From: Anthoceros angustus
Lineage: Eukaryota; Plantae; Anthocerotophyta
Direction: 5' to 3'
DNA length: 64,000 nt
Assembly: GCA_010909165.1 (NCBI GenBank)
Contig: VJWM01000019.1
Location: 186,001 to 250,000 of the forward strand
In this document: positions 6,595 through 56,926 of the stretch, piece by piece
Layout of the letters: every line of letters begins with the position of its first letter
How positions within the stretch are numbered: the first letter of the stretch is position 1
The notes under the pieces: generated by a model
The model's input: the letters and a program-made list of their open reading frames with translations, nothing else
What the model was told of the DNA's origin: nothing
The model's database searches: none
Program-made: the position numbers and the translations under genes

Positions 6595-7194
6595 ATGGCA
6601 GGCAAGGCGGCTCTGCAGCTGGTGCTGTGTGCCCTGCTGCTGCAGCTGGTGACGCGCCCGGTGGCGGCCTACTTCACGTACACGCTGAACGTGTACGCGC
6701 ACCTGACGCTGGGGGGGTCGTCGCCCACGGAGATTGCCGTGGCGCCCTACAACCAGCCGTACGGCTTCGGCTCCATCATCGTGGCGGATGACGTGCTCAC
6801 CAGCGGGCAGGCCGGCAACACCAAGGTGGTGGGGCGGGTGAAGGGGCTGGGCGCGAACACGGACGGCGACAAGGGCATCCTCAACTCCTCGCTCTACCTC
6901 ACCTTCTTCATCGACTACCTGGGATTCAAGGGCACCGTGGTGGTGGTCGGCACCAGCGTCCGCTCTGATACCGTCCGCCCCTTCGCCATCGTGGGCGGCA
7001 CCGGCGACTTCCTCCTCGCCCAGGGCCAGGCCACGCAGAAGACCGTCGCCGTCGACCCGACCTCCGACGGCGGCGTCAGCACCACCAACCTCTGGTCCTT
7101 CACCTTCTACTTCGAACTCTTCCACCCGGCCCTCGCCCAGCTCTCCTCTGACCTCGCCCTCGACGGCGAGACCCCCGTCTGGAACATTGTCTGA
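6595..7194 (+). CDS. DIR: Dirigent-family protein (DIR1), secreted
   Basis: N-terminal signal peptide; FGSIIVADDVLT, VVGRVKG and RPFAIVGGTGDFLLAQG match dirigent motifs; intronless. Confidence 0.9.
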   Translation: MAGKAALQLVLCALLLQLVTRPVAAYFTYTLNVYAHLTLGGSSPTEIAVAPYNQPYGFGSIIVADDVLTSGQAGNTKVVGRVKGLGANTDGDKGILNSSLYLTFFIDYLGFKGTVVVVGTSVRSDTVRPFAIVGGTGDFLLAQGQATQKTVAVDPTSDGGVSTTNLWSFTFYFELFHPALAQLSSDLALDGETPVWNIV

Positions 7195-9415
7195 TTCTCC
7201 TCCGCCATAGCCACGCCCGTCTACGAGCTTCCGAATCGACGACTGAAGGACGCCGACCTCCGGACGTCGATGACGACTACCACCGCCCGTGTAAATTCTG
7301 TGCTTCATACTTCTTTAGAGATATTAGGGATATACTTCCCATTCTTTCTCTTCCGGGCAAGAAGAAGGAGGAAGGCTTGAGGAAGGCATCCTTTGAGTGC
7401 TTTTCTAACTACCACCTGGCTTGGCCTAAGTGTGACTAGACATCCTCGTGGCCATGGGGCGCACCTCGATGTCATTTGCAGGACGCCAGAGTCCTCCAGC
7501 GTCCTGCAAATCGTTTATCTCCTTAGCGATCAAAGTGTGACGCCTTCCCTTTGCCCTTCTTCGTTGCGAAAGGCGCATGAGGGAAATGTCTATCCAACCA
7601 CATGTATATACGTGTCATTTCTCTCACATCGTGACCGTGTCTGACGCTCCGGCAGTGCAATAATGCAGCACCGAGGGCCGCACAAAGATGCTCTGCTCTG
7701 ACAGGAAGCTCTGCAACGGAAGGTCTAACAATTGTGCTATAAATCCCTGAGTTCTGTACATCATAACGCGCTAACCTCGCTTCTGATTCTGTGCTGCAGT
7801 GATGGCTAGAGTTTCAGGCCTCCTGCTCTCGGCATTGGCGTTCGTGCTGGTGACAGCGGCCTCGGAGCAGATTGGGGAGCTTACATTACATACACCTTGC
7901 CTTTGTATGTGCATTTGAGGTCGGGGTTCCGCGCCCACGGAGGTGACGGTGGCGCTGTACAACAACACGTTCGGGTTCAGGGCGTTGCTGGTGGCGGACG
8001 ACTACATCTCGGCCGGGAGCGACATCACCTCGGACGCTGTAGGGCGGGTGAAGGGCTCAGGGCGAACACGGACCAGAGCAACCAGGGTCAGAACTCGTCG
8101 CTCTACCTCACATTCCTCATCAGCTACCAGGGCATCAACGGGACGGTGATCATCATCGGCACCAGCGTGCGGAGCGAGACGGTGCGGCCGTTCGCCATCG
8201 TGGGCGGCACCGGCGACTTCCTCCTCGCCCAGGGCCAGGCCACGCAGAAGACCGTCGCCGTCGACCCGACCTCCGACGGCGGCGTCAGCACCACCAACCT
8301 CTGGTCCTTCACCTTCTACTTCGAACTCTTCCACCCGGCCTCGCCCAGCTCTCCTCTGACCTCGCCCTCGACGGCGAGACCCCGTCTGGAACATTGTCTG
8401 ATTCTCCTCCGCCATAGCCACGCCCGTCTACGAGCTTCCGAATCGACGACTGAAGGACGCCGACCTCCGGACGTCGATGACGACTACCACCGCCCGTGTA
8501 AATTCTGTGCTTCATACTTCTTTAGAGATATTAGGGATATACTTCCCATTCTTTCTCTTCCGGGCAAGAAGAAGGAGGAAGGCTTGAGGAAGGCATCCTT
8601 TGAGTGCTTTTCTAACTACCACCTGGCTTGGCCTAAGTGTGACTAGACATCCTCGTGGCCATGGGGCGCACCTCGATGTCATTTGCAGGACGCCAGAGTC
8701 CCTCCAGCGTCCTGCAAATCGTTTATCTCCTTAGCGATCAAAGTGTGACGCCTTCCCTTTTGCCCTTCTTCGTTGCGAAAGGCGCATGAGGGAAATGTCT
8801 ATCCAACCACATGTATATACGTGTCATTTCTCTCACATCGTGACCGTGTCTGACGCTCCGGCAGTGCAATAATGCAGCACCGAGGGCCGCACAAAGATGC
8901 TCTGCTCTGACAGGAAGCTCTGCAACGGAAGGTCTAACAATTGTGCTATAAATCCCTGAGTTCTGTACATCATAACGCGCTAACCTCGCTTCTGATTCTG
9001 TGCTGCAGTGATGGCTAGAGTTTCAGGCCTCCTGCTCTCGGCATTGGCGTTCGTGCTGGTGACAGCGGCCTCGGAGCAGATTGGGGGAGCTTACATTACA
9101 TACACCTTGCCTTTGTATGTGCATTTGAGGTCGGGGGGTTCCGCGCCCACGGAGGTGACGGTGGCGCTGTACAACAACACGTTCGGGTTCGGGGCGTTGC
9201 TGGTGGCGGACGACTACATCTCGGCCGGGAGCGACATCACCTCGGACGCTGTAGGGCGGGTGAAGGGGCTCGGGGCGAACACGGACCAGAGCAACCAGGG
9301 TCAGAACTCGTCGCTCTACCTCACATTCCTCATCAGCTACCAGGGCATCAACGGGACGGTGATCATCATCGGCACCAGCGTGCGGAGCGAGACGGTGCGG
9401 CCGTTCGCCATCGTG
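6980..9415. repeat. About 1.21 kb near-perfect tandem duplication spanning the DIR1 3' end, the spacer and the DIR2 5' part
   Basis: Sequence from about 6980 to 8204 recurs at about 8191-9415, differing mostly by single-base homopolymer indels. Confidence 0.93.
7802..8401 (+). pseudogene. DIR: Chimeric dirigent copy (DIR2 N-terminal part fused to DIR1 C-terminal part), frameshifted
   Basis: Matches DIR2 up to the shared TTCGCCATCGTGGG (8191-8204) and DIR1 thereafter. Single-base deletions in G runs and elsewhere break the frame. Confidence 0.88.
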
Positions 9416-9625
9416 GGGGGGACCGGGGATTTTCTCCTGGCCAAGGGTTTTGCCACGCAGCAGAAGATCACCTCCGTTGTGAATGTGGACGGCAGCAGCA
9501 ACACCACCAATCTCTGGACGCTCACCCTCTACTACGACCTTTTCACCCCGCCCGTGGCCAAGCTTGCTGCTGCTAACTGGGGCACGCTGGAGCGCGCTCC
9601 CGCGCTGCAAATGGTGGTGTCGTGA
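9011..9625 (+). CDS. DIR: Dirigent-family protein (DIR2), secreted
   Basis: Signal peptide; FGALLVADDYIS, VGRVKG and RPFAIVGGTGDFLLAKG; intact intronless ORF. Confidence 0.9.
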   Translation: MARVSGLLLSALAFVLVTAASEQIGGAYITYTLPLYVHLRSGGSAPTEVTVALYNNTFGFGALLVADDYISAGSDITSDAVGRVKGLGANTDQSNQGQNSSLYLTFLISYQGINGTVIIIGTSVRSETVRPFAIVGGTGDFLLAKGFATQQKITSVVNVDGSSNTTNLWTLTLYYDLFTPPVAKLAAANWGTLERAPALQMVVS

Positions 9626-11009
9626 GAGTCTGTGGGATTGTATGGTGGAAGGAGGTGCGCCTTGAAGGATTTGAGTGGAAGGTGGTACCGACTCCGTTCA
9701 GCGTTTTAGAGTGTTTTTGTATAGGTAGGTAGTCTACATCCTCCATGCCTGGAGGTTAACCAGAAGGAGCTGCCTTCCAGCAGCCTTGTGTTCGTCCATG
9801 GCCATTGCTGATGCATGTCTAACGATGCATCTGTCTAACCCTAAAGCTACCGTGCCCTGTCCTGTACATCTTCATTCCACACACACACCGCGCCATAGAG
9901 CATTTGCCCCCTCCCTTCATAGAAGAACAAAGAAATGTCTATTACAATTCCCTTGGACGAAATTTTCCACTCATGACTTGGACTTGGTACTTGTACCATG
10001 ATGTATCTAAGCGAAGTGCACCAAGGACATCAACTTCGTCTAGGCACCCTATCTAATTGTGGATCTACATGCAGGACGCTTAATCATGGTATTTTTATAA
10101 ATATGTGTATTCCTTGAGCCATTTGGACCAGAAAAAATTATATAAGATTTATATAGTAAATGATGTGAAAAAAATTATGCAATCTCGGTTTATGTAGCAT
10201 ATATGAGGTAGATGATGAAGTTGGTCATTATGTAGTGTCTCACTTTGCAAATCCTGGGCTCAAATCTGGGCTAAGAAATAGCTTAGGCTTAAGTCTTAGA
10301 TATGCTCAAAACTTTTTTATTTTAGGGATTCCTCTTGTTTTTGCTATTTTGATAATATTTTCTTGTTGGAAAATTTTGATTAAATTTTTTATCGGTACTT
10401 AAATGGAGTGCCTAGATCATGACACATTTATAAGAACCCTTAGATGGGAACTTACATGAAGTGCCTAGACCATGGCACCATGAGATTCCTTACAGGCGTA
10501 TCCCATCCTATGGCACCAAATGGGTTCCTATGAAGTGCCTAGATTATGGCATGTATGGATTCTCTCCTTCAATGCATCACCGGGAAAATGGGAAATAGAT
10601 ACAAGGGCTCTCATATCATGTTGACAACCCTTGAGCGTGGGATAAGCAAGATTATAGAGCATGCAAGAGGAGTTGAGCAAAGCTTGAGAACTAAATTATA
10701 GAGCACACAAAATTAACTCAAATACATTGTTCAACATCTAACTCTAAATTATCAATTAGCTAACCCAACAGCTTATATAAGTAATGATTATTTCAATTAT
10801 GAATATTAAAGCATGTCCTGATAAAAAAAAATATTGATGGAAAAAAAATTATGGGAAAAACTCATCCTGCACAGGGCAACCAGGGGACCTGAGGGTTGAG
10901 GTGAAAATGAGCAATCAAGCTCCCTACCGGAAATCACCGACTGCACCTACGATGTCGTATGCGTGAAGAGTAAACGGCTGACAAACTACAGAGAAAAGGG
11001 AGGATGCGT

Positions 11010-11530
11010 TACCTGCTGTCGTCGATTTGTGGATAATCGCCGTGGAGAGGGCCCGTTGAAGAACAATTGAGACTCATTGCTTGAAGAACGCTGTGAATTA
11101 GGAAAGGGACTACCCCGCACCGTGCCTGCAGGCATGATAAGCCTTGGCGTAGGACTTGATGAATGTTTCGAAGTGCTTAGTAGCACCATACGCTTCAAGG
11201 GCGGGAATGAATTGGTGCTTGCATCCCACTATATTTTCTTGACTTTTGAGAGCCGCTCCGCGCCAGAAATTAGTATTAACATAGGCAGAGATAGTGTCAC
11301 GTCGGGTCAATGACCACCGTCATTGCTGGCCATGGTCATGGTATTGATCGACTTGTATGAAGAGTACATGTACTCAGCTCCCTCTAGGCCATGTAGCCAC
11401 TTTCACGAGCTATGGCGAACATGCCATCGCGGATGGCATCATGGGTGGCAATGCGATGACCCCATGGGCGAACAAGGTGTATTGCAGGTCATCGGCGATG
11501 AGCCGCATTCAAGGTTAAGAAGGAAGAAGC
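11010..11530 (-). mobile_element. CRE-like (restriction-like endonuclease) non-LTR retrotransposon 3' remnant, copy 1
   Basis: Duplicate of the 14270-14830 remnant: HQFIP.LE.YG, TFIKSYAKAYH, VSIVLQRALSTAII, ATHDAIRD. Confidence 0.65.
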
Positions 11531-11735
11531 CACAAGCAAGAGCGGGCCAAGATATTCACAGTCCAGAGATATATGTCCCTTTGTGTGCTATCAAAATTCC
11601 TTGACGTAAATCTAGGCGAGCCTGTGCGTCAGTATGCGCAACAAAACAAGGCCCACTCGACATATGGTCTACATACCAAGCTGGAAACATGATTCTTTGG
11701 GAAAGCAGTCCACGAGCCTGCACACAATGGAACAT

Positions 11736-11905
11736 AAGAAGAAGAAGAAGAAGAATTTTATTTAAGTCCACTAAGGACGAATTTCCGTCACGGGACTTGG
11801 TACTTACCAACTTGTACCTTGTGTGCCTAAGCTACTTGCACCAAGGGCATCCACTCCCTTTAGGCACCCCATCTAAGTACCGATCTAAGCTCAGGTTCTT
11901 ATAAA
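11736..11905 (-). mobile_element. Short element ending in the LINE-type 3' tail (hairpin + TAAATAAAA + (TTC)n); further copies at about 12633-12803 and 15033-15205
   Basis: About 45 nt plus the microsatellite tail is almost identical to the LINE 3' end at 19268-19325; the upstream part is unrelated to that LINE. Confidence 0.6.
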
Positions 11906-12096
11906 TGTGTGTCCATAAGCAATGGAGAATGAGCACATCAACATGTTGTAGGGCAGATAGGCAGGGCAAACGGCAGACAACAATCTCGGTTCCCCATTCC
12001 GCTCAGGGCATCCGGGAGTCGCAGCAGCTATCCTCGCTCTGCAGACTCAGAATTGCCAATTAGGGCGTTCTTAAATACATTGTCCTAAGAATCGCC

Positions 12097-28500: not shown

Positions 28501-29560
28501 CTGCACAGACACGAGTTGGCGAGTCACCCAGCCATTGTTCACTCTCACTTCCCCTGTGCTCATGAGCGCACGCAGCCTTTCAAGGTCTTCACTGGGGTCA
28601 ATCACCAAGCTCCCATCTTGATGCTTCTCGCCCATACACGCCTCGAAGAGGCCAAATCCCCAAATTGGGCTGTCCCTTTGCCCATCCGCCTCCACAACAA
28701 TTCTCGTGTGCGGTGTCTCCTATCCCCACCTCGTAGGACGGTTCGGTGAAATGTCGCCAAAAATGTCCGGAGCTCGTTGCGGTCTCGGCTGAAGTTAACC
28801 CCTCCTCTCCTAGGGGTTGATGCCTTGCCTCTTCCCGCTTCATTCTCCCCTAGCGGCGTGATTCATCCCTGCACAGGAGGAGCAACTTGCCACCATTTCC
28901 CTTTTCTCCTCCTTTACCAGCGTTCTGCTGTCTTGACTGGTGACCACAGGTGTGGCGTGGGTTCCTCCTCTGCTGTTTCCTCCCTTTTTGACCCGTTCTG
29001 TGCGCCCTTCTTACCCTTGGAAACTTCCCCACCCTCTTAGAACCTTCGAGGCGCTCTACTTTGGAATCCTTGCGAATCCTCCTTCAATTCCTCCTCTTCT
29101 ACCTTGAGTTCCTGGCCGGCTTCCAACCATGCGGGCGGACCGACTTCAACTCAGTTAAACACCGGAATGCGCAAATACATGAATCGAGAAAAGGCGAAAT
29201 CAAGGAGGGCCGAGGGAAGGAAAGTCGCCTTCTCCTCACAGGCTCTTTCGAAAATCATCCTTCCCCAATCAATTTGTGTACCCTTGACCACCTCGTGAAG
29301 AAAAACCAAGAAGTGATCCGCCATATGATCCGACTTAGGTTACATAGGAAACACAAAATCCATTTGGCCAATCCACGGTGCTTGAACACGAGTTGGCGAG
29401 TCACCCGACCATTGTTCACTCTCACTTCCCGAGGCTTCATGGTAGCGGCTGCGGCTCTCAAGGTCTTCTTTTCAATCACCAAGCTCCCATCTTGATGCTT
29501 CGCCCCCTGCTTTGCTCGAAGAGGCCAAATCCAGATTCTGCGGCCTTTTCCTCGCGTCAC
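25540..29560 (-). mobile_element. Tandemly reiterated retroelement accessory-ORF region (plant-transposon/PMD-like domain), units of about 1.1 and 0.9 kb
   Basis: Repeated blocks at 25585/26695 and 27760/28652. Minus-strand ORF 27970-28695 has HFLVFLHEVVKGTQIDWGRMIF...PSLISP, resembling the G..I.WG..I motif of plant LTR-element accessory proteins. Confidence 0.55.
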
Positions 29561-30731: not shown

Positions 30732-30849
30732 GACGTTTCTCCTCCAACAGATGGTCCGAGTCCAAGCATGATATCCGAAGCCATAGGAAAGTAGGTGCTG
30801 CGCCTATGCGCTCAAAGGCGGGCCAGCTATGTATGCTATGGCCACTTTG

Positions 30850-32230: not shown

Positions 32231-32284
32231 TCGATCCAATCGCTTACGGCCCCTCAATTGAACATGCAGACCTTACTGGGCACA

Positions 32285-36050: not shown

Positions 36051-36109
36051 AAGATGGTAAATTGTAATATGCAATTGTAATATGCAACTACTCTGGATTG
36101 ATTGTTGCA

Positions 36110-39100
36110 AGATGGGCTCCAGTGAATTGAACTCAATTTCTGCAATGGGAAATTGTTCCCAGGCCCCTGCGCGAGAGATGTCACGTGTTGGCCTGCAGCC
36201 CAGGCTTCGTAACAGATTCGTAGCCTCCAGCGCAGGCTTGGAATTGGACAGCCCAGACATCCGGTCAGCTTGGACTGGTCAGCTTGAGCTTCATGCATCT
36301 GGGAAGAGAATTGTTATTCAAGAGTGAGCACACGATTGATGCATCCTGGCCTGCCTGATTTCCTATACCTGCTGCCTGCTCCCTGTCCTCCAAGACTTCA
36401 ACGCTAATTGGCGTGCTTGTAAGTTGCCGCCAAGCGTGCCGCCAGGATGTTTGCATGCTTAGTTGGCGACGCTCGATCGTTGGCGTTGGTCAAGGTGGCT
36501 GAACATTGCACTCGACACCAGCTTCCCCAGTTTTGGTGAGAAAATCAGCAGATATACTTGTGTCATCTGTTTGCGAGAGTTGAGTATCTGCTTGCGCAAG
36601 TTGGTTGATCCTAGTCCCAGTCCCAGGAAGTGGCAGAAGCTATGTACATTCGTTTGCAGAAAACAGAGAGCGGTCATCACGGCCTTGACTAGTAGTGAAG
36701 GAGCACAAAATATGGAGCTAACGAGCTACAAAAATACCTTGCGCAGAAAGTCCCTGCGGGATGGGATGCTCGAAGACAGTTTGCAAGGGCCTGTGCACAT
36801 ATTTGGTCGTTCCTCAGTCCGGTCCTAGAATTCGGCACAGCTGGCCCACACTTGCATTATAGATCCGACAGGTGAGGCCATCATGGATGCAGAGTTTGCT
36901 GGTGCACAAACACACCGAATGGAAAGCCAAATGGAAACATGGGCATACAAGGTCCACCGCCCAAGGGCGCCAGTACATGGGATACTAAAATACTTTCTGA
37001 TATGTTCACAAGCATACGACAGCAGGGTTTCACTCACATCTGTCACCTCCAGCTCACTTCTTACAGCAGTTTAGCAGACTATTCTACACGCGTGTGTTCC
37101 AGTTACACCCTGTCCTAGGCAAGCACATTCAGATCCGCCACAGTCTAGCATTTTGGGCATATTGTGGTACATTTTGGGCATCGCTGTGCTTTACTGGCTA
37201 AAGTTCTCCTCCAGGATCTATATCGCTGTGTCTTTACTGGCTAAAGTTCTCCTCCAGAACCTAAACCCAGCCACAGTTCTCAAATCGACCAATCAGCCAT
37301 CACCTCTGCCATGCCACTTGCCCAATTGCGAAGGACCCAAGTTTGCACATATCACACTGCAAGATGCAGCCACTCGCCCCAATCCTCAACAGCGAATCAA
37401 GCCTCGTTGTAGGGTGATCCACAAGGACTGATCACCACCCAAATTTTCAACCAGCAATGCTAGTACTGTGCTTGCTGCCTTGTCTTTCAGAGGGTCAGGG
37501 GCACCAAGAGGGGAAGCCAGGAGCACTGCTCTTCAAAACAGCGTCCGACTCGGACACACAGCCTATTCCTACACGAGAAAATGGAGTCTACGTTGTCCAA
37601 TTCAAGCTCAAATGTAGATAATTCCAAGCCTGGTCTGGAGGCTACGAATCTGTTACGAAGCCTGGGCTGCAGGCCAACACGTCACATCTCTCGCTCAGGG
37701 GGCCTGGGAACAATTTCCCATTGCAGAAATTGAGTTCAATTCACTGAAGCCCATCTCCCTCCCAAGGAGTGCTCCAGCGTGACGACTTTGTGCACGTACA
37801 GACGTCCAGCTGCGACGTTCTCCAGACGCCTGAAGTCAAGAGCATTCCAGATCCACGCCCAAGGGCGCCAGTACATGGGATACTAAAATACTTTCTGATA
37901 TGTTCACAAGCATACGACAGCAGGGTTTCACTCACATCTGTCACCTCCAGCTCACTTCTTACAGCAGTTTAGCAGACTATTCTACACGCGTGTGTTCCAG
38001 TTACACCCTGTCCTAGGCAAGCACATTCAGATCCGCCACAGTCTAGCATTTTGGGCATATTGTGGTACATTTTGGGCATCCTTTGTGCTTTACTGGCTAA
38101 AGTTCTCCTCCAGGATCTATATCGCTGTGTCTTTACTGGCTAAAGTTCTCCTCCAGAACCTAAACCCAGCCACAGTTCTCAAATCGACCAATCAGCCATG
38201 CTTGTGTTCAAACAAGTATTCAGCTCAGTGTTCAGCTCGCACAAATTGCAAGGATGGCAAGCATGTTCACAATCGCCTTGGGATTGCTGTTGGTGGCCTG
38301 CCATCTGTGTATGCTGCTCCGCCAGCGCAACATCGCCAAGCTATGGTTTCAGATCTGCTCCAAGCTCCGCCAGGGAGGAGCAGCAGCCCGACTCTCCATC
38401 TCCTCCAGGTCCACCAGGCCTCCCGATTGTAGGCAATCTGTTCCAGCTGGGATCCGATCCGCACCGAGCACTTGCGGAGCTCAATCGGAAATACGGACCA
38501 GTTGTGTTCCTCCGGCTCGGCGCCAGGCCTACCTTGACCACCTGCTCCCCACACATCGCCAAGGAGATCCTCAAGACGCAGGATCATGTCTTCGCATCCA
38601 GAGCTCCCACTGTGGCTGCCGAATATTTCGCCTACGAGTTCAATGACATCGCCATGGCGCCTTACGGACCTGCGTGGAGGAAGGCCAGGCGGATTTGCGT
38701 TTCGGAGCTCTTGACTCCCAGGTTTGGGCAAAGTGAACATATATGTTCAACATCTCTGCGATTCAAATCATGTGATTCGTTGTCGAGAGCACCGTGTTCA
38801 TATCACACTGCAAGATGCAGCCACTCGCCCCAATCCTCAACAGCAGATCAAGCCTCGTTGTAGGGTGATCCACAAGGACTGATCACCACCCAAATTTTCA
38901 ACCAGCAATGCTAGTACTGTGCTTGCTGCCTTGTCTTCAGAGGGTCAGGGGCACCAAGAGGAAGCCAGGAGCACTGCTCTTCAAAACAGCGTCCGACTCG
39001 GACACACAGCCTATTCCTACACGAGAAAATGGAGTCTACGTTGTCCAATTCAAGCTCAAATGTAGATAATTCCAAGCCTGGTCTGGAGGCTACGAATCTG

Positions 39101-39290
39101 TTACGAAGCCTGGGCTGCAGGCCAACACGTCACATCTCTCGCTCAGGGGCCTGGGAACAATTTCCATTGCAGAAATTGAGTTCAATTCACTGAAGCCCAT
39201 CTCCCTCCCAAGGAGTGCTCCAGCGTGACGACTTTGTGCACGTACAGACGTCCAGCTGCGACGTTCTCCAGACGCCTGAAGTCAAGAGCA
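36110..39290. repeat. Local repeat cluster: about 0.9 kb unit (36955-37855) repeated at 37855-39290 with a CYP insert, and a 135-bp inverted copy at 36110-36245
   Basis: GCCCAAGGGCGCCAGTACATGGG at 36958 and 37857; GGAGGCTACGAATCTGTTACGAAGCCTGGG at about 37637 and 39086, and its reverse complement at about 36195. Confidence 0.85.
38191..38807 (+). pseudogene. CYP A fragment (5' UTR, exon 1 from 38254, part of intron 1)
   Basis: Near-identical to about 40872-41487; bounded by 9-bp microhomologies ATCAGCCAT and CATATCACA. Confidence 0.88.
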
Positions 39291-39357
39291 TTCCAGATGC
39301 CCGCCTCACCACACAACAACAGGATCAAGCATCACAAGCATCAGAAATCTCACAAAA

Positions 39358-39470
39358 TGCAGCAGCAACAGCACAAATCTCGAGACGCTCACCTTCTACT
39401 ACGATCTTTTCACCCCGCCCGTGGCGAAGGCGAAGCTTGCTGCTGCCAACTGGGCACGCTGGCGGGCGTT
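39358..39470 (+). pseudogene. 3' remnant of a third dirigent paralog (mirror of 18890-18975)
   Basis: GCAGCAACAGCACAAATCTC..GACGCTCACCTTCTACTACGATCTTTTCACCCCGCCCGTGGC aligns to the DIR2 3' end. Confidence 0.75.
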
Positions 39471-39564
39471 CTGGATCAGTTCCTATGAGACTGAGGAGGG
39501 GGGAGGGGCGCGGCGTGCATTGTGTTGTAAATATAAATCTTATTGCCCTTCAGTCGGTCACCAA

Positions 39565-39638
39565 GTCTGGGTGGTGTAGTTGGTCATCACGCTAGTCTCA
39601 CACACTAGAGGTCCCCGGTTCGAACCCGGGCTCAGACA
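39565..39638 (+). tRNA. trnV-CAC: tRNA-Val (anticodon CAC)
   Basis: 74-nt cloverleaf identical to the 18724-18797 copy. Confidence 0.96.
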
Positions 39639-40934
39639 AACACTCTTATCTACGACAGATCTGTTTCAAGCATTATGGCCAAATTTTATTATTCTGGTTA
39701 TTGAACTTGGGTAACATTTTCCATTTTCTTGTTGGAGAACTTGGGTTACATTTTCCATTGCCGACCATGGCGATACAAAGTACCTAAACAAACATATAAA
39801 TGAAAGAGACTTTATAAAATAAGCAAAGGTGAGGAGTCCCATCCACACAAGGCGGTGGAGAACAAGCATTTTATTTTTGTTGAAGAGCTTTGGTAACATT
39901 TTCCAACCGTATCAAAAACACCCACAGGGCGATACAAAGTACTTATATAAATATATACATGGAAAAGAATAAAAACTTTATAAAATAAGCAAAGATGGAT
40001 GTCCCATCCACACAAGGCAGTGGAGAACAACCCACAAATGGGCCCTTGGCTAAAATATATAAATCGCCATGCGTGTTTGCAGTGAGAGCATGGAAGTCTA
40101 TTTTTCTGAGACTCTCCCTCTCCACACATCAATCGAGTAACCCATGGTCAAGCTAAAATGTAAGTAAGTGTGAGTCAGGATGCAATCTTGCAGGTTCCTG
40201 CTTTCATTTCAGTACTTCCAGAGTCGGTATCTAGACTACCTAGTACTAAGTACTAAGCGGGCCGCAGGTAATGGAAGCTGGATGGGATGGGATGGGCTTT
40301 GGAACGAGGACTTAGATAGTGTGTGGGCTTCACCTTTCCCAACCCTGTATTCCAAACAGCTTGCCAGTAGCTAGAAACTGAGAGCTGGCGCATCTGGGCT
40401 GTCGAGAGTTGCACTCATGGGATCCTGAACATCTGGAGTAATGTGAGCCTGTCAACTTGAAGCTCTCGGTCTTTCCTCAGCACCTTCTGTGAAAGAGCCT
40501 TGAAAGTAAAACCATACATAGGTATGCAATGCACGTACGCACGCCTTGAAGGTTGATGAAAGATATCTTGCACCCGTGCAAGCCTGCTGGTTGGTAGCAC
40601 TTTTGTCTGTGGATCTGGTAGGAGTCACCGTCCGAACTGAGGGTCAGGCATCACCCAGGCTGGAGCCTAGGACCATGATGTACAATGAGGCTGCCTCCGC
40701 ACCTACTGCCTCAAACAGCTTTTGATCGGATTCCATTGTAGTGGAGCCTGAGGCAGTGTCAGACACCAGCCTGTTCACATTTAGGATTGTCCTTCTTCCC
40801 CAGGCCTGCAGGCATGCTTCCAAGTTGCTTAAGTATTCTAGTCCAGGTTTCAGCATTGTCCTGGCTTCAACATCAGCCATGCTTGTGTTCAAACAAGTAT
40901 TCAGCTCAGTGTTCAGCTCGCACAAATTGCAAGG

Positions 40935-43007
40935 ATGGCAAGCATGTTCACAATCGCCTTGGGATTGCTGTTGGTGGCCTGCCATCTGTGTATGCTGCTC
41001 CGCCAGCGCAACATCGCCAAGCTATGGTTTCAGATCTGCTCCAAGCTCCGCCAGGAGGGAGCAGCAGCCCGACTCTCCATCTCCTCCAGGTCCACCAGGC
41101 CTCCCGATTGTAGGCAATCTGTTCCAGCTGGGATCCGATCCGCACCGAGCACTTGCGGAGCTCAATCGGAAATACGGACCAGTTGTGTTCCTCGGCTCGG
41201 CGCCAGGCCTACCTTGACCACCTGCTCCCCACACATCGCCAAGGAGATCCTCAAGACGCAGGATCATGTCTTCGCATCCAGAGCTCCCACTGTGGCTGCC
41301 GAATATTTCGCCTACGAGTTCAATGACATCGCCATGGCGCCTTACGGACCTGCGTGGAGGAAGGCCAGGCGGATTTGCGTTTCGGAGCTCTTGACTCCCA
41401 GGTTTGGGCAAAGTGAACATATATGTTCAACATCTCTGCGATTCAAATCATGTGATTCGTTGTCGAGAGCACCGTGTTCATATCACAGATTTCCCATCTG
41501 AGTGTCAGGCGTCTGGAATTATTCGCAACGTCGAGAAGAGAGGAGGCGGACATCATGGTGCAAGAATTTGGGAGAACTACCAAACTGGCAAGGTGACAGA
41601 CCTGCAGATCACGCTTGGAGGCTGTGCCATGAACATCATCACCCGGATGCTCTTCAGCAAGAGCTACTGCCAGGGAATCCGATAACCGAGACAGGCTCCC
41701 AAGAGCCGGACATTCTGAAGATGCTTCACAAATCCTTCCAGCTCATGGGAGCAATCAACATCTCCGATTATCTGCCGTACCTGCGGAGGTTCGACTTGCA
41801 GGTAAGCTGCTAGCCCTTTGGATTTCAAGACAATCGTCACGACTCCCTTCCATACGTACCTGGTGCAAATGTGCATATCGTGCCAGGGCTGATCGTGTTG
41901 CACACGTTCTACAGGGCTACGAGAAGCAGATGCGAGCAATTAGGAAACAAGTAGACGACATGTATAACGGCATCATCGAGAAGCGACGGCAGCTCCAGAA
42001 ACAAAATCCTGGAAGCGAGCCACAGGACTTCGTGGACCTGCTGTTAGCTTCCACCAACGGAAAGCAAGAAGAAGAAAGAGCACCCCTGTCCGACACAGCC
42101 GTCAAGGGGATCCTTCATGTAAAGCTTGCTTGCCTCACCTCTTCTGAATCATCATTTGTAACAGAGCGTGAAAGTTGTCCCAGCTGCTAACGCCTGTACA
42201 GGATTCATGAGTGTCCTGTGCACATGTGCTTGCCAGGACATGATTGCTGCTGGCACCGACACGTCGTCCGTGTCAAGCGAGTACGTCATGGCCGAGCTCC
42301 TGCTCAACCCTAACATTCTGAAGAAAGCGCAGAGCGAGATCGACGACAAGGTAGGCATGCACAGGCTGGTGGAGGAATCGGATGTGATGGAGTTGCACTA
42401 CTTGCGATGCGTGGTAAAGGAGGCTCAGCGATTGCATCCTTCTGGCCCCTTCGTCGTGCCGCACTTTTCCATGGTCGCCACTCAGGTACCTACTAACAAC
42501 CTGAGCTTGCTTGATCTCCTGAAATTTGCAAACCGATTTCGTCATTGCGCATGGTGGTCGACGTCGCAGGTAGGTGGGTATGATGTTCCAAAAGGGACCA
42601 CGGTGCTGGTGAATGTTTTTGGACTGGGCCGCAACCCTGATGTGTGGGACAATCCGGAGCAATTCCATCCTGAGCGCTTTGCATCGGAAGCCAACCCCGA
42701 TTTGAAAGACCCCGAGTTCAGAATTGCAGTATTCGGAGGAGGAAGACGAGGGTGTCCCGGTGCCGCGCTCGGCACCCTCATTGTGCTCCTGGGAGTAGCA
42801 AGGCTCATCCAATGCTTCGACTGGGCCTGTCCACCTGGAGCCAAAGTCGACTTGACAGAGGTGTATGGAATGACATGCCCCCTCAAGCACCATCTCATGG
42901 CCATGGGGACGCCTCGCCTGCCCCACCATCTCTTCGCACAACTGGCCACAGCCCTGAAGTCTGAGGAGTCGGACCTCCTGCAAAGTGAGTTCACATCCCC
43001 AATGTAG
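40935..43007 (+). pseudogene. Cytochrome P450 (CYP703-like) paralog A, copy 2; exons 40935-41401, 41509-41801, 41915-42118, 42237-42485, 42570-43007; frameshifted as assembled
   Basis: Same motifs as copy 1. Compensating +1/-1 indels in exon 1. Exon 2 is 293 bp versus 295 bp in paralog B (two 1-bp deletions), giving a TAA at 41683-41685. About 550 aa if restored. Confidence 0.88.
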
Positions 43008-43388: not shown

Positions 43389-45320
43389 ATGGCAAGTTTG
43401 TTCACAGTTGCGCTGGGATTGCTGTTCGTTGCATACAGCTTGTTTGTTCTGTTGCCCACGCGAAAGGCCAAGTGGAAAGAAGGCCTCACTCTTCCTCCAG
43501 GGCCGCCGGGTCTCCCCATTGTTGGCAACCTTTTCCAGGTTGGCCCAGAACCGCACAAGAAGTTTGATGAGTGGAACCGGAAGTATGGGCCCGTTGTCTT
43601 CCTCCGCCTGGGCAGCAGGCCCACTCTGGTCACCAATTCTCCTCACATTGCCAAGGAGATCCTCAAGACGCAGGATCACATTTTCGCATCCAGGCCTCCC
43701 ACCGTGGCGGGCGAGTACTTCTCTTACGGATTCAACGACATTGCATTCGCACCTTACGGTCCCATGTGGAGGAACCACAGGCGGATTGCCGTCACAGAGC
43801 TCTTGACTCCCCGGTTTATATTCTATACTGCTTTAGCATCTGGAGCTTTGTCTTGAATTTGTGATTACGGCTTGACGCCTGCAGAGATTGAGATTGCATG
43901 ATGGTGATTGTGGAACAGGCGGGTGGAGACATTCGCGGCACAAAGAAGAGAAGAGGCTGACATTATGGTGCAAAGGATATGGAAGAACTACCACTCTGGA
44001 AGAGTGACAGACTTGCAGAGCACGCTAGGAGGTCTGTCCATGAATATCATCACACGGATGCTGTTCAGCAAGCCCTTCTTCCTGGGAGAGACACTCACTG
44101 AAACAATCTCAGAGGAGGCCAAAGCGCTTGCCACCATTCACAAGACTTTCAACCTCATGGGTTTGATCAACATCTCGGACTACTTCCCTTGGCTAAGGAG
44201 GTTCGATTTTCAGGTGACATTCGGCCGTGCAAAGCTATCTTTGCCTGATCAAGCTTACCTCAACATGCACTTGATTGAACAGGGAGTGCCGACTGAGTCT
44301 CGTCATTCCTTCGTTCGCGCAGGGTTACGAGGCACAGATGAAGCCCGTCAGGAAAGAAATGGATAAAACTTACGAGGCGATCGTTGAGGAACACAGGAGG
44401 AACGCAAAGAAGAAAAATTCTGAAAACATCCACAAGGATTTCGTGGACTTGCTGTTGGAGGCTAAAGATGAGCAAGAATTACCTTTGTCCCTCACCGCCA
44501 TCAAGGGCCTCATGCATGTAAGCTCAATGACATCTTCTTGGAGTCCATACGAGGATGTACGAAGGGCAGAGCCTTGGAACTGATGTTGATTTACACCTTC
44601 AGGACATGATTGCTGCTGCAACAGACACATCCTCAGTGTCAAGTGAGTACCTCATGGCTGAGCTCCTGCTCAACCCAGAGATTATGAGGAAAGCACAGGC
44701 CGAGATCGACAAAAAAATAGGGCAGGACAGGTTTGTGGAAGAGTCGGATGTTATGGATTTCCACTATCTCCGCTGTGTAGTGAAGGAGTCTCAACGATTG
44801 CACTCATCCGGCCCTTTCCTTATCCCCCACTACTCCATGGAAGCCACCGAGGTATGCGTATCTACACCTTTTTTTTTGTCGTGGATCAAAACGTTTGTGA
44901 GTGACGATCTCTTCACATGTGGCTTCATGGCAGTTGGGAGGACATTACATTCCAAAAGGTACCACAACGATCATCAGTGCCTACGGCTTGGGACGGAATC
45001 CAGATCTGTGGGAGAATCCAGAAAAGTTCGACCCTGACCGCTTTGCCCATGAGCCAAATCCGGACCTGCGAGAACCAGAGATGAGAGTAGTTGTGTTCGG
45101 GGGAGGAAGGCGAGGCTGTCCTGGTGCCACACTGGGCACCTACATGGTTCTGCTGGCGGTTTCCAGGCTGATCCACTGCTTTGACTGGACAATCGCACCT
45201 GGACAGACCGTTGATTTCACTCAAGAATATGGAATGACCACCCCAATGAAAAATCATCTCCAGGCTGTTGGCAAACCTCGTCTGCCGGAACATCTGTACA
45301 CTCAGTTGTCCAGAACCTGA
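43389..45320 (+). CDS. Cytochrome P450, CYP71 clan, CYP703-like paralog B; intact, 516 aa; exons 43389-43813, 43919-44213, 44323-44517, 44603-44851, 44934-45320
   Basis: All introns are GT-AG; the spliced length is 1551 nt and in frame. [72 protein letters not shown]. Confidence 0.92.
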
Positions 45321-47427: not shown

Positions 47428-48288
47428 ATGGCACCCTTTCCACGGAAATTGCGGAAGAACAAAGATAGGGCTTTCCCTAGTTTTAATTCACTAATTGAGG
47501 AATTGCCTATAGTGGAGTTAGGTGAAACTTGGGAAGGGTACCCATATGCACCCAAACCATTTCCGGGCAAGGATGACAAATGGACAAGGATTGTTCAGGG
47601 TTCCAGAGCCGTGTCCAGCACAAGTGGGTATTATGCTGCTGTGCCTGTTATAGCACCTAGGGCATTTCTTAAATCAGAAGAACATTCCCAGAAATTCTCT
47701 TGTTCAAACAAATTGACGAAGTATGTTAGAGAACATTATCCGGAGCTGAAAGAATATGCTCATGAGCTTGCTAGTTCCTTTCAATGGAAAATACCACGTA
47801 TGAACAATCATCCAGGACATGTGGTAACAAGTAAAACTTATGACCGTCCTTGCATCCTTCTGGGACGTGAGACACAAGAAGCAGCTGACAAGTTCATGCT
47901 TTCCAAGAAGAGAGATGTCACGACAACAAACTCGGGTACTAATATTCTTGGATCTGCTCTTGGAAGCACTTGCAATTTTGTTGAAAATGGTGGGTCCGAC
48001 GAGAGGCTTGAGGCTAGGCTTACCATGCAAAGTCAAATTAGTTCCACCAGCTCGAAAGAAATAGCAACAAGTGATTCTTCTCAAAAGAGGGTAAAAGAAC
48101 AAGATATCAACACCTCTCCTAAGAGGAGTAGAAGACATATTATCAATACGCCTTCAACTCTTGGATTTCCTTCCGATGGGACTAATGCAGGCAATGGTTC
48201 CAAGATACAATCTCCCACTTTAAATCTTATGGTAAAGCTAGCTGAAGATTTATGTTCTCATGACGATGTAGGTGATTTTTGCTCTTAG
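47428..48288 (+). CDS. Unknown 286-aa protein of a repeated, probably TE-borne family; conserved N-terminal domain and Ser/Thr-rich tail
   Basis: Intact ORF, nearly identical in protein to 53489-54379 over about 260 aa; flanking non-coding DNA is also homologous. Confidence 0.65.
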   Translation: MAPFPRKLRKNKDRAFPSFNSLIEELPIVELGETWEGYPYAPKPFPGKDDKWTRIVQGSRAVSSTSGYYAAVPVIAPRAFLKSEEHSQKFSCSNKLTKYVREHYPELKEYAHELASSFQWKIPRMNNHPGHVVTSKTYDRPCILLGRETQEAADKFMLSKKRDVTTTNSGTNILGSALGSTCNFVENGGSDERLEARLTMQSQISSTSSKEIATSDSSQKRVKEQDINTSPKRSRRHIINTPSTLGFPSDGTNAGNGSKIQSPTLNLMVKLAEDLCSHDDVGDFCS

Positions 48289-50103: not shown

Positions 50104-50187
50104 TGTTATAGCTGATTTTATAGTCACCCCGAAGAGGTGTGACTCTTGGGAAGTGAGGTAGCCTATCTAGTTTGATATTCCTATACT
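50104..50187 (-). repeat. Very short (about 84 bp) LTR-like unit next to a polypurine tract
   Basis: TGTTATAG...CCTATAC, followed on the plus strand by CTTCCCCTCAAGG (minus-strand PPT CCTTGAGGGGAAG) just beyond the RNase H end; homologous to 56955-57039. Confidence 0.6.
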
Positions 50188-50189: not shown

Positions 50190-52700
50190 CCCTCAAGGTA
50201 GACCTATTAGGCTAACTTGTTGTCTTGGTCGGAGAGCACACTAACACCCAGAAGAGCTGCACAAGCGAAGTGTTTGTCCCGTGGGAGAGTCAAGATGTCA
50301 GCCCCCATCAGCTCTGTTGGGCAGTACTCAAGTCATACATCCCCGGCTGCGCACTTCTTACGTCCATAGTGATATTGGAGATCAATGCACGTGGACCTAG
50401 AACTAAACTTCGGGTTGCCTGCGAGAGCGAGATTGGATTGGTTGTCTATCTTGATGACCAGTGGCCTCTGCTGCATCATACTGAGTTCATCAAGGAGCCG
50501 GATGCGATCCACTACGCGCTTGGTGGTGAGCGTAGCAGCCATGTACTCATATTCGGTAGATGAGAGTGTTATGGCAGTCTGCCGCTTGGATCCCCAATCA
50601 ATTGCGGCGTCACAAAGCATCAAGGCGAATCCTGATGTGGATTTCTTGGAGTCCACGTCTCCCCCCTAATTAGTATCGGTGTAGGCTGAAAGTTGGGGAA
50701 AGGAGGCAGTAGCTGCATTGCCGATGGGAGGTCCATGGTACTTGAGTCCATAAGCCATGGCCCCCTTAAGATAGCGCAAAGTCTGCTTAAGGGCGGACCA
50801 ATGTGCAGGTCCGAGGTTAGCCATCTGTTGAGCGAGTACACGAACAGCGTGCCCGATGTCGGGACGCTTATGGTTGTGCAGATCCAATTGATCCGCCCAA
50901 CTGCTTCTTGATAGGGAATCATCCCCATATACTGCTCCTCGTCGGTCTTGGGTGCCTAGTTACAGGACAAGGGTGCTCCGACGGCGAGCGGAGTAGGTGC
51001 AAGTTTGCATTCCAGCATGTTGAAGCAAGTTAGCGTGTTCTTAAGATATTGCGTTTGAGTAATATGCAAGGTTCTAAGTGCACGGTCACGAGTAACCTTC
51101 ATCCCATGCAATAGTGAATATCACCTAAATCAACCATGCTGAACTTAGACTTGAGCATTAGGATGGTCTTCGCGAGCAACCCATGCTTATCATTGCTAGC
51201 AAGGATGCAATCATCCACGTACAAGGCGAGGATGACAAGAGCATCATCAGGCCGGAGAATGTAGACGTTACCATCGGATCCAGGGCACTTAGTAAATCTG
51301 CAAGCTATGAGGAAGTCATCCATGTAGACATTCCAATTCTTGGCGGATTGCTGAAGGCCATAGATACTGCGTTGTAGCAAACATACGAGATGGTCTTTGC
51401 CTTTCTCCTCATAGCCCTCGGGTTGACGCATATATATTTTCTCTTGCAATTTCCCATACAAAATTATCGTCTTAACATCCAGCTGTACACCTCCCAATCA
51501 TGAAAGGTAGCACGAGCGAGGATGACGCGTAGAGAGCTAGTCTGGATGACAGGGGAAAAGAGGTTATCTGCATCGTAGTCGTCCTTAGCACGCTGAGTGT
51601 AGCCTTGTGCCACGAGTCTTGCTTTATAACGGTCGATGGCGCTGGCGACGTCGGAGGTGTACTTGATCTTGAAGGTCCACTTGCTGCCGACTTCGGATCG
51701 GCCGGGTGGCAGATCACAAAGTTGCCATGTCTTGTTATCTTGCAAGGACTAAAACTCATCGTCAACAACCTTCTTCGACTCAACTTCTTGTGGCCCGGAA
51801 GGGCGGCCGTTAATATGGTAGGATCCACTATATCAAAAGTTGATTACAAAACTTGAACAGGAGTGGAAGTGGCCACGCTGGTAGCATGTCTGTTAGAAGT
51901 CCGTTGAGTTTGTTCAAGGTTCTCAAGTGCCTTCCTGCTAAGGGTCCGCTCCCTAGCGAAGTGCTGGAGGTCCGTTTGCAGGAGGAGGTGAATCAGGGGG
52001 GTGAGATACCTCTTCTGCAGGAAAGAGAAGGGATCCACCAAGATCAAGGTCCGAGTCTTCACTGCTAGAGGGCACGGGAGAGGGAGGAGCTTGAGAGGTG
52101 GAAGGAGTGGAAGGAGGGGCAGGAATGACCGGCACAAGTAATGGCATAAGCGCCATGTAACATGTTAACAGGGGGATGAATAGTAGGTTGAGGAGCCGGA
52201 AGCACATATGTAGCTGGCAGAGGTGCACACTCCCATTCATCCTCCCCCCTTGCACCAACGTCAGCAAAGACATCCGATGCGGAAAAAGTAGGATCAAAAG
52301 GAGGTACATCTCCCCCATGGGCAGCAGCAGGGGAAATGAGGAGGGGCTCCTCGTTGAAGATCCTCCGTCACGGCTGTCCCCCTTTATTCAACATGTCTGG
52401 GGGCACCATAACCTCCTGAAGGAAGGTGAGGAAGAATGCGCGCTCCGCCGGGGGCTAACCCACCTGTCTATCGCAGGCAGGGAGGAGGAGGAGCATGACA
52501 CTAGCACCAAGGCAGCGGCGGAGCCCAGGACCAGGCGTAGGCAGGAGAAGGATGACTGGGAGGGCATCCCGGATCGACTAGAACGGACCCCCTCACCACT
52601 GAGGGAGATATGGGAAGAAATTCTCTCTGCCCTGCTGCTAAACAAGGCACCCCAGGAGGAGGTCACACCCATGGCTGCACTGGTGGAGGAAGAGGCTTGT
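50190..52700 (-). mobile_element. Ty1/copia remnant (RT-RNase H and upstream linker)
   Basis: DNKTW, YKARLVAQG, DVKT, YGLQQSA, LYVDDCIL, KSTSGF, LSSTEYEY, IDNQS; frameshifts and stops. The left boundary is firm, the right one approximate. Confidence 0.88.
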
Positions 52701-53488: not shown

Positions 53489-54379
53489 CTAATACGATAA
53501 CGAGAAAAAATCATCTATACCGTCCTCAGAACTTAAATCTCCAGCTAGCGCTGAAGTGGAAGGAATTGGCTCAACCACAGGATCTGGTGTGGGAGATTGC
53601 AACTTGGAACCCTTGCCTGCTTTAGTCCCACCGGAAGAAAATCCAAGAGTTGAAGGCGCGTTGACTAAATGTCTTCTACTCCTCTGAGGAGAGGTGTTGA
53701 TATCTTGTTCTTTTATCCTCTTTCGAGAAGAGTCACTTGTTGCTATTTCTTTCGAGTTTGTGGAACTAATTTGACTTTGCATGGTAAGCCTAGCCTCAAG
53801 CCTCTCGTCAGACCCACCATTTTCAACAAAATTGCAAGTGCTTCCAAGAGCAGATCCAAGAATATTAGTACCCGAGTTTGTTGTCGTGACATCTCTCTTC
53901 TTGGAAAGCATGAACTTGTCAGCTGCTTCTTGTGTCTCACGTCCCAGAAGAATGCAAGGACGGCCATAAGTTTTACTTGTTACCACATGTCCTGGATGAT
54001 TGTTCATACGTGGTATTTTCCATTGAAAGGAACAAGCAAGCTCATGAGCATATTCTTTCAGCTCCGGATAATGATCTCTAACATAATTCGTCAATTTGTT
54101 TGAGCAAGAGAATTTCTGGGAATGTTCTTCTGATTTAAGAAATGCCCTAGGTGCTATAACAGGCACAGCAGCATAATACCCACTTGTGCTGGACACGGCT
54201 CTGGAACCCTGAACAATCCTTGTCCATTTGTCATCCTTGCCCGGAAATGGTTTGGGCGCATATGGGTACCCTTCCCAAGTTTCACCTAACCCCAATATAG
54301 GCAACTCCTCGATTAGTGCATTAAATCTAGGGAAAGCCCTATCTTTGTCCTTGCGCAATTTCCGTGGAATTGATGCCAT
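53489..54379 (-). CDS. Unknown 296-aa protein, paralog of 47428-48288
   Basis: Intact ORF; shared flanks extend from about 52800 to 54600 and mirror about 47200-48570. Confidence 0.65.
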   Translation of the reverse strand: MASIPRKLRKDKDRAFPRFNALIEELPILGLGETWEGYPYAPKPFPGKDDKWTRIVQGSRAVSSTSGYYAAVPVIAPRAFLKSEEHSQKFSCSNKLTNYVRDHYPELKEYAHELACSFQWKIPRMNNHPGHVVTSKTYGRPCILLGRETQEAADKFMLSKKRDVTTTNSGTNILGSALGSTCNFVENGGSDERLEARLTMQSQISSTNSKEIATSDSSRKRIKEQDINTSPQRSRRHLVNAPSTLGFSSGGTKAGKGSKLQSPTPDPVVEPIPSTSALAGDLSSEDGIDDFFSLSY

Positions 54380-54597
54380 GATGGAAAAAGAAATATGAAT
54401 TCACACAGTCCTACATCATAAAAGTCCATGCTAAATTAGACTTCATCAATTACCTAATTCCAAACACATGAGAAAAGGAACTCACTCTTGTGAACAAAAT
54501 TCTTACATTCCTTCAAAATTGCGAAGAAAAGATAACACAATTCTAAAATTCAAAACTTTCTCACATCCTAACTAAGAGTACACAAGTTCATCACGAC

Positions 54598-55462: not shown

Positions 55463-55507
<45 letters not shown>
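55463..55507. repeat. (TAT)n microsatellite
   Basis: Directly visible run of about 15 units. Confidence 0.95.
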
Positions 55508-55618
55508 CTTTTCCATAAACTCTAGAGTAGGAGGAGATCTATTCTAACTTCACACCCTCTTTTAAACTTGAATGAGGGTGAGGTATAAGAGTGCAAAACC
55601 CATCTTGTAACTTCAACC

Positions 55619-56926
55619 TTATGTGAACCTACTGCTACCTTTCATCACATGTTGTCGCAGTCCTGGTAGATAAATATTGGATGATAAGTAGTACCTGTCA
55701 ATTTTGCGCCCACTAAAGTGCTCAAAATCAGCTTCTTCCTTTGGAGCAGCTCATTTTGAAGGTTCAAACTGTTGCTGCTGCCAAATCTGCCAGTGCACTA
55801 ATTACTACCATAAAAACATTTGACACACAAGCAGGCTAGTATGTCAGCATGAGAGACTCCACCGTACCGGCTGTGCCTCATCGTCCTTGATAGAAAGTAT
55901 ACGGTTTAAAGAGAGCAGCCACGTGCTCAAACTTTGTTAGATGACATTTTTGAGTCTCCCAAGGCGATTGAAGTATGTTTCTCATTTCTTGGCAAATGGT
56001 AACAAACCCAAGATTTCAACCCTTCTAATTTTGTCCATATGTATATTAGTTGGAAATTAAACATTCGTAACGACAATCAAGATAATTAGTTGAAGGGAGG
56101 GAGCACGGCTGGCTTTGAAGAGTACAGGACCAAGTGCTTGTCAATGCTAAAAGGTAATTAAGAACAAATCTCAAGGTTTCGAGCCTCACTGAGAGGTCTT
56201 GTGTTTTACCTGTTCTGGCAAAGTGAACCGAACTGAGATACATGAATATCTTGAACACCCCGAGGTTTGGGAATGAAGTGCATTGGCCTGATCTTCACCT
56301 TGCCCGTGTCACGGGCGAGTAGGGGATCCTTGGTAAAATATTCATACAAAATGTTGAAAAGCAGGTCCAAACTTAAAGGATTTCAAGACGATGGATGATG
56401 CCACATGATATATTGCCAGCCCAAACTGACGGCTATGCTTCACCACATGTACAAGGAGGGGCGGAGGTGGGGATGTTCATGAATCACCTGTGAAAACATG
56501 CAAAAACATTTGGAGGCATACGCAGCGTTTTCCAAATTCCAATTTTCTTTTTGGTTCGAGGGTGCTAGTGTTCAAGATTGTGTCATGTCTACAATCTGCA
56601 TACAAGGAGTGTAGGCTGTAGTGGGTTCTTTTTCAATCTTAACGAGACCTCTCACAGCAACATCTCAAAGTTAAGATTTGATTTCAACAATTGGAATGGT
56701 GGCGAGGACTTGAAATGTCACCGTGCATCGAAGTTTGTATTGGTTGCAAAATTGACGATAACATCCACCTTGGTCACGACTTGGGTGGCCATAATTTGGT
56801 CCATCCCAAGACTCCAGCTAGTGATATTGCCAGGTACAACGTAGCGGTGAGCTAGCTTTCCATGAATTCCTGGAAGCGGTTGTCATGTATTTTGCGTAGC
56901 ACCTCAAACACTTCCGAATTCTTGAC
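55619..56926 (-). pseudogene. FAR: Fatty acyl-CoA/ACP reductase (FAR, MS2-like) pseudogene; first exon missing, centre largely deleted
   Basis: Minus-strand remnants in FAR order: SEVFEVLRKIHDNRFQEFMES*, VVPGNIT..LGMD..VDVIVNFATNTNFDAR, AIYHVASS, EYFTKDP, LFKPYTFYQG and IYLPGLRQHVMK, with GT-AG introns after NFDxR and YxG as in plant FARs. Confidence 0.78.

Follow-up and report, generated by a model that had tools for sequence, protein, structure and literature searches.

A duplicated CYP703-lineage locus beside a dirigent array in Anthoceros angustus

Introduction

CYP703 is conserved in land plants, where it provides precursors of spore and pollen walls, and CYP703A is typically single-copy (bioRxiv 10.1101/2024.10.10.617703). 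CYP703A2 is presented in Morant et al. (2007) as a lauric acid in-chain hydroxylase for sporopollenin. Dirigent proteins (PF03018) are represented by the solved beta-barrels of PsPTS1 (6OOD), DRR206 (4REV) and AtDIR6 (5LAL), and proteins of the MS2/FAR family by the domain pair PF07993 and PF03015. Genes of these three families occur together in a stretch of 64,000 nucleotides of Anthoceros angustus DNA (assembly GCA_010909165.1, contig VJWM01000019.1, positions 186,001 to 250,000 of the forward strand), hereafter the window, which is analyzed here; coordinates are those of the window. In it a CYP703 locus that has undergone duplication lies next to an array of dirigent genes, both of known kinds.

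In plants, biosynthetic gene clusters (in the Osbourn-type definition), such as those for avenacin, thalianol and noscapine, are commonly associated with tandem duplication and richness in transposons. An initial annotation of the window suggested a possible cluster of this sort, in which a cytochrome P450, a dirigent and a FAR gene would co-operate. We read the window instead as an ordinary neighbourhood of genes that arose through local duplication, without evidence for a working metabolic cluster, and put the probability of this reading at about 0.72.

Window P450s are placed in the CYP703 lineage

Three P450 genes were found in the window: the tandem neighbours CYP A and CYP B, and CYP A', an inverted copy of the former (Table 1). 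The motifs AA(A/G)TDTS, KE(S/A)QR, P(D/E)RF and FGGGRRGCPG were read in these genes, and each of the five exons of CYP B gave a Pfam p450 match (that of exon 2 under the cut-off), as did the CYP A exons tested. All P450 searches and trees were run on single exons or uninterrupted open reading frames (ORFs); the CYP A query was an ORF of 281 residues that runs through exons 4 and 5 and a small in-frame intron.

The best P450 matches to the window genes, from Ginkgo, Adiantum, Selaginella and Sphagnum, are just 40–52% identical. A word-based search with the CYP A ORF returned, among proteins of up to 491 residues, generic CYP71-clan names only. In an all-against-all search the three best single-domain matches to this ORF were proteins from a Logan contig (P0133, 52% identity), Adiantum (P0003, 50%) and Ulmus (P0136, 49%). 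P0136 is an orthologue of CYP703A2; proteins 73–88% identical to it across angiosperms carry the name cytochrome P450 703A2. The proteins P0133, P0003, P0005 (Selaginella) and P0142 (Sphagnum) are 40–49% identical to P0136 over their full length; look-ups of the exact Selaginella and Adiantum proteins returned no record. A metagenome scan with CYP B exon 1 revealed a single relative, at 43% identity.

For the C-terminal half, a careful maximum likelihood tree (38 rows, 211 columns) was built with 25 outgroups, the nearest 50%-identity representatives of other CYP71-clan families, including CYP788A1, 71A1-like, 93A, 81Q, 75 and 71AU. Exons 4 and 5 of CYP A, CYP A' and CYP B joined five CYP703A proteins and the four non-seed proteins just listed, with an ultrafast bootstrap of 100 and a Shimodaira–Hasegawa-like approximate likelihood ratio test (SH-aLRT) value of 99. 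The placement was upheld in a quick tree of 100 rows (SH-aLRT 99), and an independent tree of exons 1 and 2 again put the window P450s in the CYP703 clade, with support of 98/96. Within the clade they fall among the non-seed-plant relatives, and in one of two trees they are sister to the Sphagnum protein.

Summed exon by exon, CYP B is 42.5% identical to P0136, 44.4% to P0400 and 43.5% to the maize protein P0406, compared to 34–39.5% for other P450 families. By the convention of P450 nomenclature, a family member shares 40% or more of its amino acids with named proteins of the family, a threshold that CYP B passes by a small margin. The sequences DMIAAATDTS, YLRCVV and GPFLIPH are common to the window P450s and P0136. 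With CYP703A2 and CYP703 in general the window genes share the I-helix AAATDTS, ExxR, P(E/D)RF and FGGGRRGCPG motifs and, by both protein halves, the clade. Together, these data place the window P450s in the CYP703 lineage of the CYP71 clan.

Two old CYP703 paralogs are retained

CYP B has five exons (43389–43813, 43919–44213, 44323–44517, 44603–44851 and 44934–45317, followed by the stop codon). Its four introns, of 82–109 bp, all have GT-AG splice sites, which were read directly. The 516-residue product shows a hydrophobic anchor at its N-terminus, the hinge PPGPPGLP and the motifs AAATDTS, KESQR, PDRF and FGGGRRGCPG. By family membership, CYP B is predicted to be an in-chain hydroxylase of medium-chain fatty acids, anchored in the endoplasmic reticulum and feeding sporopollenin, a role that is established for CYP703A2, and CYP A would probably share it. 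Intron positions vary within the CYP703 clade: unlike CYP B, with its five exons and short introns, the Sphagnum magellanicum gene of this clade, in the region 9340033–9361908 of CM038925.1, has no intron where exons 4 and 5 of CYP B meet.

Over 413 codons, synonymous divergence (dS) between CYP A and CYP B is about 1.5 and the ratio of nonsynonymous to synonymous divergence (dN/dS) is 0.15. CYP A and CYP B are old paralogs, and purifying selection acted on both during the greater part of their history. Since CYP703A is reported to be typically single-copy, the retention of two of them is mildly unusual; in the window, recent copies come on top of at least two old paralogs. In a non-seed plant, two maintained paralogs and very recent copies of a usually single-copy gene make a modest but real addition to what is known of P450 evolution, and a natural test of sub- or neofunctionalisation.

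A tandem dirigent array and dirigent scraps

Three dirigent genes, DIR1, DIR2 and DIR3, form a tandem array on the plus strand at 6.6–9.6 kb. DIR1 and DIR3 are intact and 56% identical in a pairwise alignment, and DIR2 is chimeric and frameshifted. DIR1, DIR3 and the C-terminal part of DIR2 (38.4 bits) all exceed the cut-off of Pfam Dirigent (PF03018), 29.1 bits. The N-terminus of DIR1 is hydrophobic and resembles a signal peptide, as is typical for secreted proteins. Among structures in PDB, DIR1 matches PsPTS1 (4e-13) and also DRR206 and AtDIR6; the window dirigents match the solved beta-barrels with E values of 4e-13 to 4e-7. Their products are predicted from sequence to be secreted beta-barrel proteins. 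They are very divergent with respect to known dirigent proteins, and a word-based search of 5.8 billion proteins revealed no relatives of DIR3 at E ≤ 1e-3.

In an alignment, the 5' part of DIR2 is about identical to DIR3 and the 3' part about identical to DIR1, making it a near-exact chimera. The breaks in its ORF consist of only five deletions of 1–2 nt, four of them within G or C runs; against these stand two or three substitutions relative to the parents. DIR2 may be a pseudogene or an intact gene hit by indel errors of the assembly.

Local duplication accounts for the layout

The order dirigent remnant, tRNA-Val(CAC), CYP A, CYP B at 39.3–45.3 kb, the two intact dirigent genes with remnants of a third, and the tandem pair of distinct CYP703-like paralogs had all been named in the initial annotation, and each was recovered here, with three dirigent scraps in addition to the broken DIR2 and with CYP A and CYP B at 40.9–45.3 kb. 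Self-BLAST revealed how these elements are related. A 3.7-kb segment at 15419–19150 is an inverted, 98.5% identical copy of 39199–42949 and contains a dirigent scrap and tRNA-Val, with CYP A as far as a point shortly before its stop codon. The dirigent array has a duplication period of 1.2 kb, which gave the chimeric DIR2. A 2.4-kb tandem unit is present in two copies, each of which includes the last ~90 bp of CYP A, and nested tandem copies occupy 36.9–39.3 kb, including a copy of CYP A exon 1. The inverted repeat, the dirigent period, the 2.4-kb unit, the nested copies and the DIR2 chimera are the grounds on which we attribute the layout to duplication.

We propose that the ancestral locus would have consisted of a dirigent gene, tRNA-Val and the two old CYP703-lineage paralogs side by side. 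The block comprising the dirigent 3' end, tRNA-Val and CYP A would recently have been copied in inverted orientation to a place beside the tandem dirigent array, and the remainder of the locus would have been filled by small tandem duplications and by insertions of long interspersed nuclear elements (LINEs) and Copia elements. The dirigent 3' scrap beside tRNA-Val, at 87% identity, shows that a dirigent gene formerly stood upstream of CYP A at a distance of ~1.5 kb. Dirigent and P450 genes are, then, old and real neighbours that stayed together through duplication, and the present richness in copies is the result of recent duplication.

Much of this complexity might come from the assembly itself. 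Outside a scrambled edge of 200 bp, CYP A and CYP A' differ by 8 substitutions and 12 indel events, mostly of single bases in short runs, and the DIR2 breaks described above are of the same kind. Neutral decay does not produce more indels than substitutions; long-read consensus errors in near-identical repeats do. The inverted CYP A', the chimeric DIR2 and the frameshifts could then be artefacts of a simpler true locus (DIR1, DIR3, tRNA, CYP A and CYP B) with all copies intact. We consider it unlikely that an artefact explains that much. The copies carry distinct flanks and real substitutions, and the arms of the inverted repeat enclose a 20-kb spacer of unrelated transposons, unlike fold-back artefacts. 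The unique genes CYP B, DIR1, DIR3 and GST are clean. In addition, one 1-nt deletion in exon 2 is common to CYP A and CYP A'. Each copy also has private 1-nt indels, and exon 3 of CYP A' carries further indels. Indel sites in CYP A lie near 41068 and 41192 (exon 1), near 41561 and, for the common deletion, 41680 (exon 2), and near 42072 and 42106 (exon 3).

Given the excess of indels, CYP A, CYP A' and DIR2 may each be either a pseudogene or an intact gene. Most frameshifts in CYP A and DIR2 may be assembly errors in near-identical copies. The view of CYP A as a clear pseudogene, frameshifted in all copies, was rejected, because CYP A' has an in-frame exon 1 and the indels are for the most part single-nucleotide changes that occur in one copy only and fall in short runs. 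A frameshift in the repeated portions of this assembly is unreliable and calls for read-level support before pseudogenisation is claimed.

FAR remnant and the cluster proposal

The initial annotation also listed a decayed FAR gene, and such a remnant is indeed present. It was missed by simple motif regular expressions and found by a Pfam scan of ORFs of at least 44 residues in 45.3–58.2 kb. One exon (56721–56882, minus strand) matches NAD_binding_4 ('Male sterility protein') with an E value of 9.8e-5 and 22.1 bits (cut-off 20.1), covering profile positions 64–103 of 258; this exon is what the remnant shares with MS2/FAR. Three or four pieces at 55622–56476 (minus strand) look by eye like the FAR C-terminal region, an assignment that Pfam did not confirm. 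These pieces, which we take to be FAR-like, read, for example, ...IYHVASS / NPLSLDLLFNILYEYF... / ...KPYTFYQGR / ...YLPGLRQHVMKG. No match to Pfam Sterile (PF03015) was found in them at E ≤ 1, and a protein atlas queried with one FAR-like piece gave no usable match.

Unlike MS2/FAR proteins, the remnant is without the N-terminal Rossmann GxxGxxG and the catalytic YxxxK, neither of which was found by motif scans or in the ORF census, and no GxxGxxG exon is present upstream of the supported exon. Between this exon and the next piece there are only ~250 bp, a stretch in which an intact gene requires ~200 codons, YxxxK among them. At least one frameshift is present. The 5' end is truncated at a transposon-like 81-bp repeat shared with the Copia-rich region. 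None of this decay hinges on errors in single bases, and the FAR gene is dead. The 81-bp repeat is inverted (56958–57038 and 50105–50185, 91% identity), encodes a peptide-like ...HFPRVTPL.GDYK.SYN... and is probably the end of a transposon; one copy lies at the FAR 5' end, the other next to Copia debris.

As a fragmentary pseudogene, FAR cannot supply precursors, and P450 and dirigent genes therefore remain as the intact pathway candidates. In a functional cluster, fatty acids hydroxylated by the CYP703-type enzymes, or phenolics from a neofunctionalised paralog, would enter dirigent-guided phenoxy-radical coupling to yield a spore-wall or phenolic-lipid polymer. The initial annotation made this proposal depend on CYP B being inside the CYP703 lineage, which is where both trees and the identities of 42.5–44.4% put it. 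Several other observations speak for the proposal. Intact dirigents of the secreted type are adjacent; dirigent scraps move together with the tRNA–CYP A block; and two old paralogs were kept under purifying selection in a usually single-copy lineage. Two further ones also weigh against our own reading. Before the rearrangements a dirigent gene stood within ~1.5 kb of CYP A, and the dirigent array is now 5.8 kb from CYP A'. The FAR relic, left by a second enzyme of the sporopollenin type, lies 10 kb from a CYP703 gene, which is suggestive, though it may be due to chance.

We nevertheless find a functional cluster improbable, and the inference drawn in the initial annotation is weakened and lacks support. 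FAR is non-functional, and the intact candidate enzyme classes number only two. The intact enzyme-type genes of the window are P450, dirigents and one GST, which falls short of at least three intact non-homologous pathway enzymes side by side. No PKS, ACOS, TKPR, laccase or peroxidase was found in the Pfam census of ORFs from 1–58 kb. The intact dirigents and the intact CYP pair are 31 kb apart, with 20 kb of transposons and repeats between them, and only the recent copy CYP A' is near the former. In Sphagnum magellanicum, S. jensenii and Magnolia sinica, the 10 kb on either side of the CYP703 homologues contain neither a dirigent nor a FAR gene. In the literature searched there was no report tying dirigents to CYP703 by function or position. 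If a couple of hundred P450s, a dozen or more dirigent loci and a genome of ~120 Mb are assumed, roughly one or two dirigent–P450 neighbourhoods are expected per genome by chance, a figure that is assumed and not computed.

Like plant biosynthetic gene clusters, the window has non-homologous families (P450, dirigent, GST) physically close to each other. It differs from them in that the third named enzyme is dead and a signature scaffold-forming enzyme is absent. On present evidence we would not class the locus as a biosynthetic cluster, and local duplication remains our preferred reading. The adjacency of dirigent and CYP703 genes is nonetheless a cheap lead. A bolder version, in which two CYP703 paralogs of ancient divergence stayed physically linked, in a bryophyte, to a dirigent array specific to the lineage, and one paralog and the dirigents assemble a phenolic-aliphatic polymer of the spore wall or cuticle, strikes us as highly unlikely; if true, it would provide the first genetic handle on phenolic coupling into sporopollenin-like material.

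Other features of the window

The window is nuclear plant DNA; its introns are short and of the GT-AG type, its coding regions are rich in G+C, and fragments of retroelements are numerous. Features are listed in Table 1. Pfam scans covered 131 ORFs of at least 44 residues in 45.3–58.2 kb and 150 ORFs of at least 75 residues in 1–6.6, 9.6–15.4 and 17.4–36.8 kb. Beyond P450, dirigent and FAR, this census of 1–58 kb gave only GST, DUF7081, reverse transcriptases and the endonuclease domain of a LINE, as well as matches at chance level. Apart from these three families, the only enzyme-type gene of the window is GST, an intact single-exon gene situated 4 kb upstream of the dirigents; no record of the exact protein was found in the protein collections looked up.

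Table 1. Positions of genes, gene fragments and repeats in the window
Feature	Position	Strand	Description and evidence
GST	1905–2666	+	single ORF, 253 residues; Pfam GST_N_2 3.5e-19, GST_C_2 3e-8
DIR1	6595–7194	+	intact single-exon ORF; Pfam Dirigent 7.9e-25, 87.7 bits
DIR2	7799–8420	+	chimera, 5' part from DIR3, 3' part from DIR1; tandem duplication of 1.2-kb period
DIR3	9011–9625	+	intact single-exon ORF; Pfam Dirigent 1.2e-21, 77.4 bits
2.4-kb tandem unit, two copies	9796–12208 and 13058–15509		95.6% identity; self-BLAST, tblastn
Dirigent N-terminal scrap	12187–12379	+	adjoins first copy of 2.4-kb tandem unit; tblastn
CYP A'	15397–17427	-	inverted near-identical copy of CYP A; exon 1 in frame, exon 2 frameshift common to CYP A; Pfam p450 1.5e-48 and 3.2e-19
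tRNA-Val(CAC), inverted-duplicate copy	18724–18797	-	ARAGORN
Dirigent C-terminal scrap, inverted copy	18902–18982	-	tblastn with DIR3 residues 167–191, E 4e-8
Spacer between inverted copies	19150–36900		LINE (RVT_1, Exo_endo_phos) and Copia (RVT_2) debris, G+C-rich tandem duplications, no recognisable genes
Extra CYP A exon 1	38254–38725	+	99.5% identical to CYP A; inside small tandem duplication
Dirigent C-terminal scrap	39319–39453	+	directly upstream of tRNA-Val and CYP A; tblastn with DIR3 residues 150–191, 69% identity, E 1e-11
tRNA-Val(CAC)	39565–39638	+	ARAGORN
CYP A	40935–43007	+	CYP703-lineage P450 by tree placement; catalytic motifs present; 1-nt indels in exons 1 and 2
CYP B	43389–45320	+	intact CYP703-lineage P450 by tree placement; 5 exons, 516 codons
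FAR	55622–56882	-	fragmentary pseudogene; one supported NAD_binding_4 exon and unconfirmed C-terminal-like pieces

Within the spacer, three successive tandem duplications occupy 21808–29532, with units of ~1.7, 1.1 and 0.9 kb and identities of 87–92%. This block has a G+C content of 0.53–0.58, a strongly negative GC skew and long ORFs on both strands, none with a Pfam match. It is bracketed by 1.5-kb direct repeats (19619–21146 and 32712–34260, 80% identity). These were considered as long terminal repeats, and this was rejected: since the second copy holds a LINE-type reverse transcriptase ORF (RVT_1, 33313–33972, minus strand) and Exo_endo_phos matches lie nearby, the repeats are LINE copies. 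Copia-type fragments (RVT_2, SH3_retrovirus) are found at 34708–35322 (plus strand), 51102–51497 (minus strand) and 60597–61697 (minus strand), with no complete element in the window.

Two intact DUF7081 ORFs, at 47428–48285 (plus strand, 286 residues, E 1.5e-12) and 53492–54379 (minus strand, 296 residues, E 1.6e-11), form an inverted pair of 89.5% identity around Copia reverse transcriptase debris at 50.3–52 kb, and may belong to a transposon. Near this pair, at 54.58–54.97 kb, there is a microsatellite-like stretch with a period of 30 bp.

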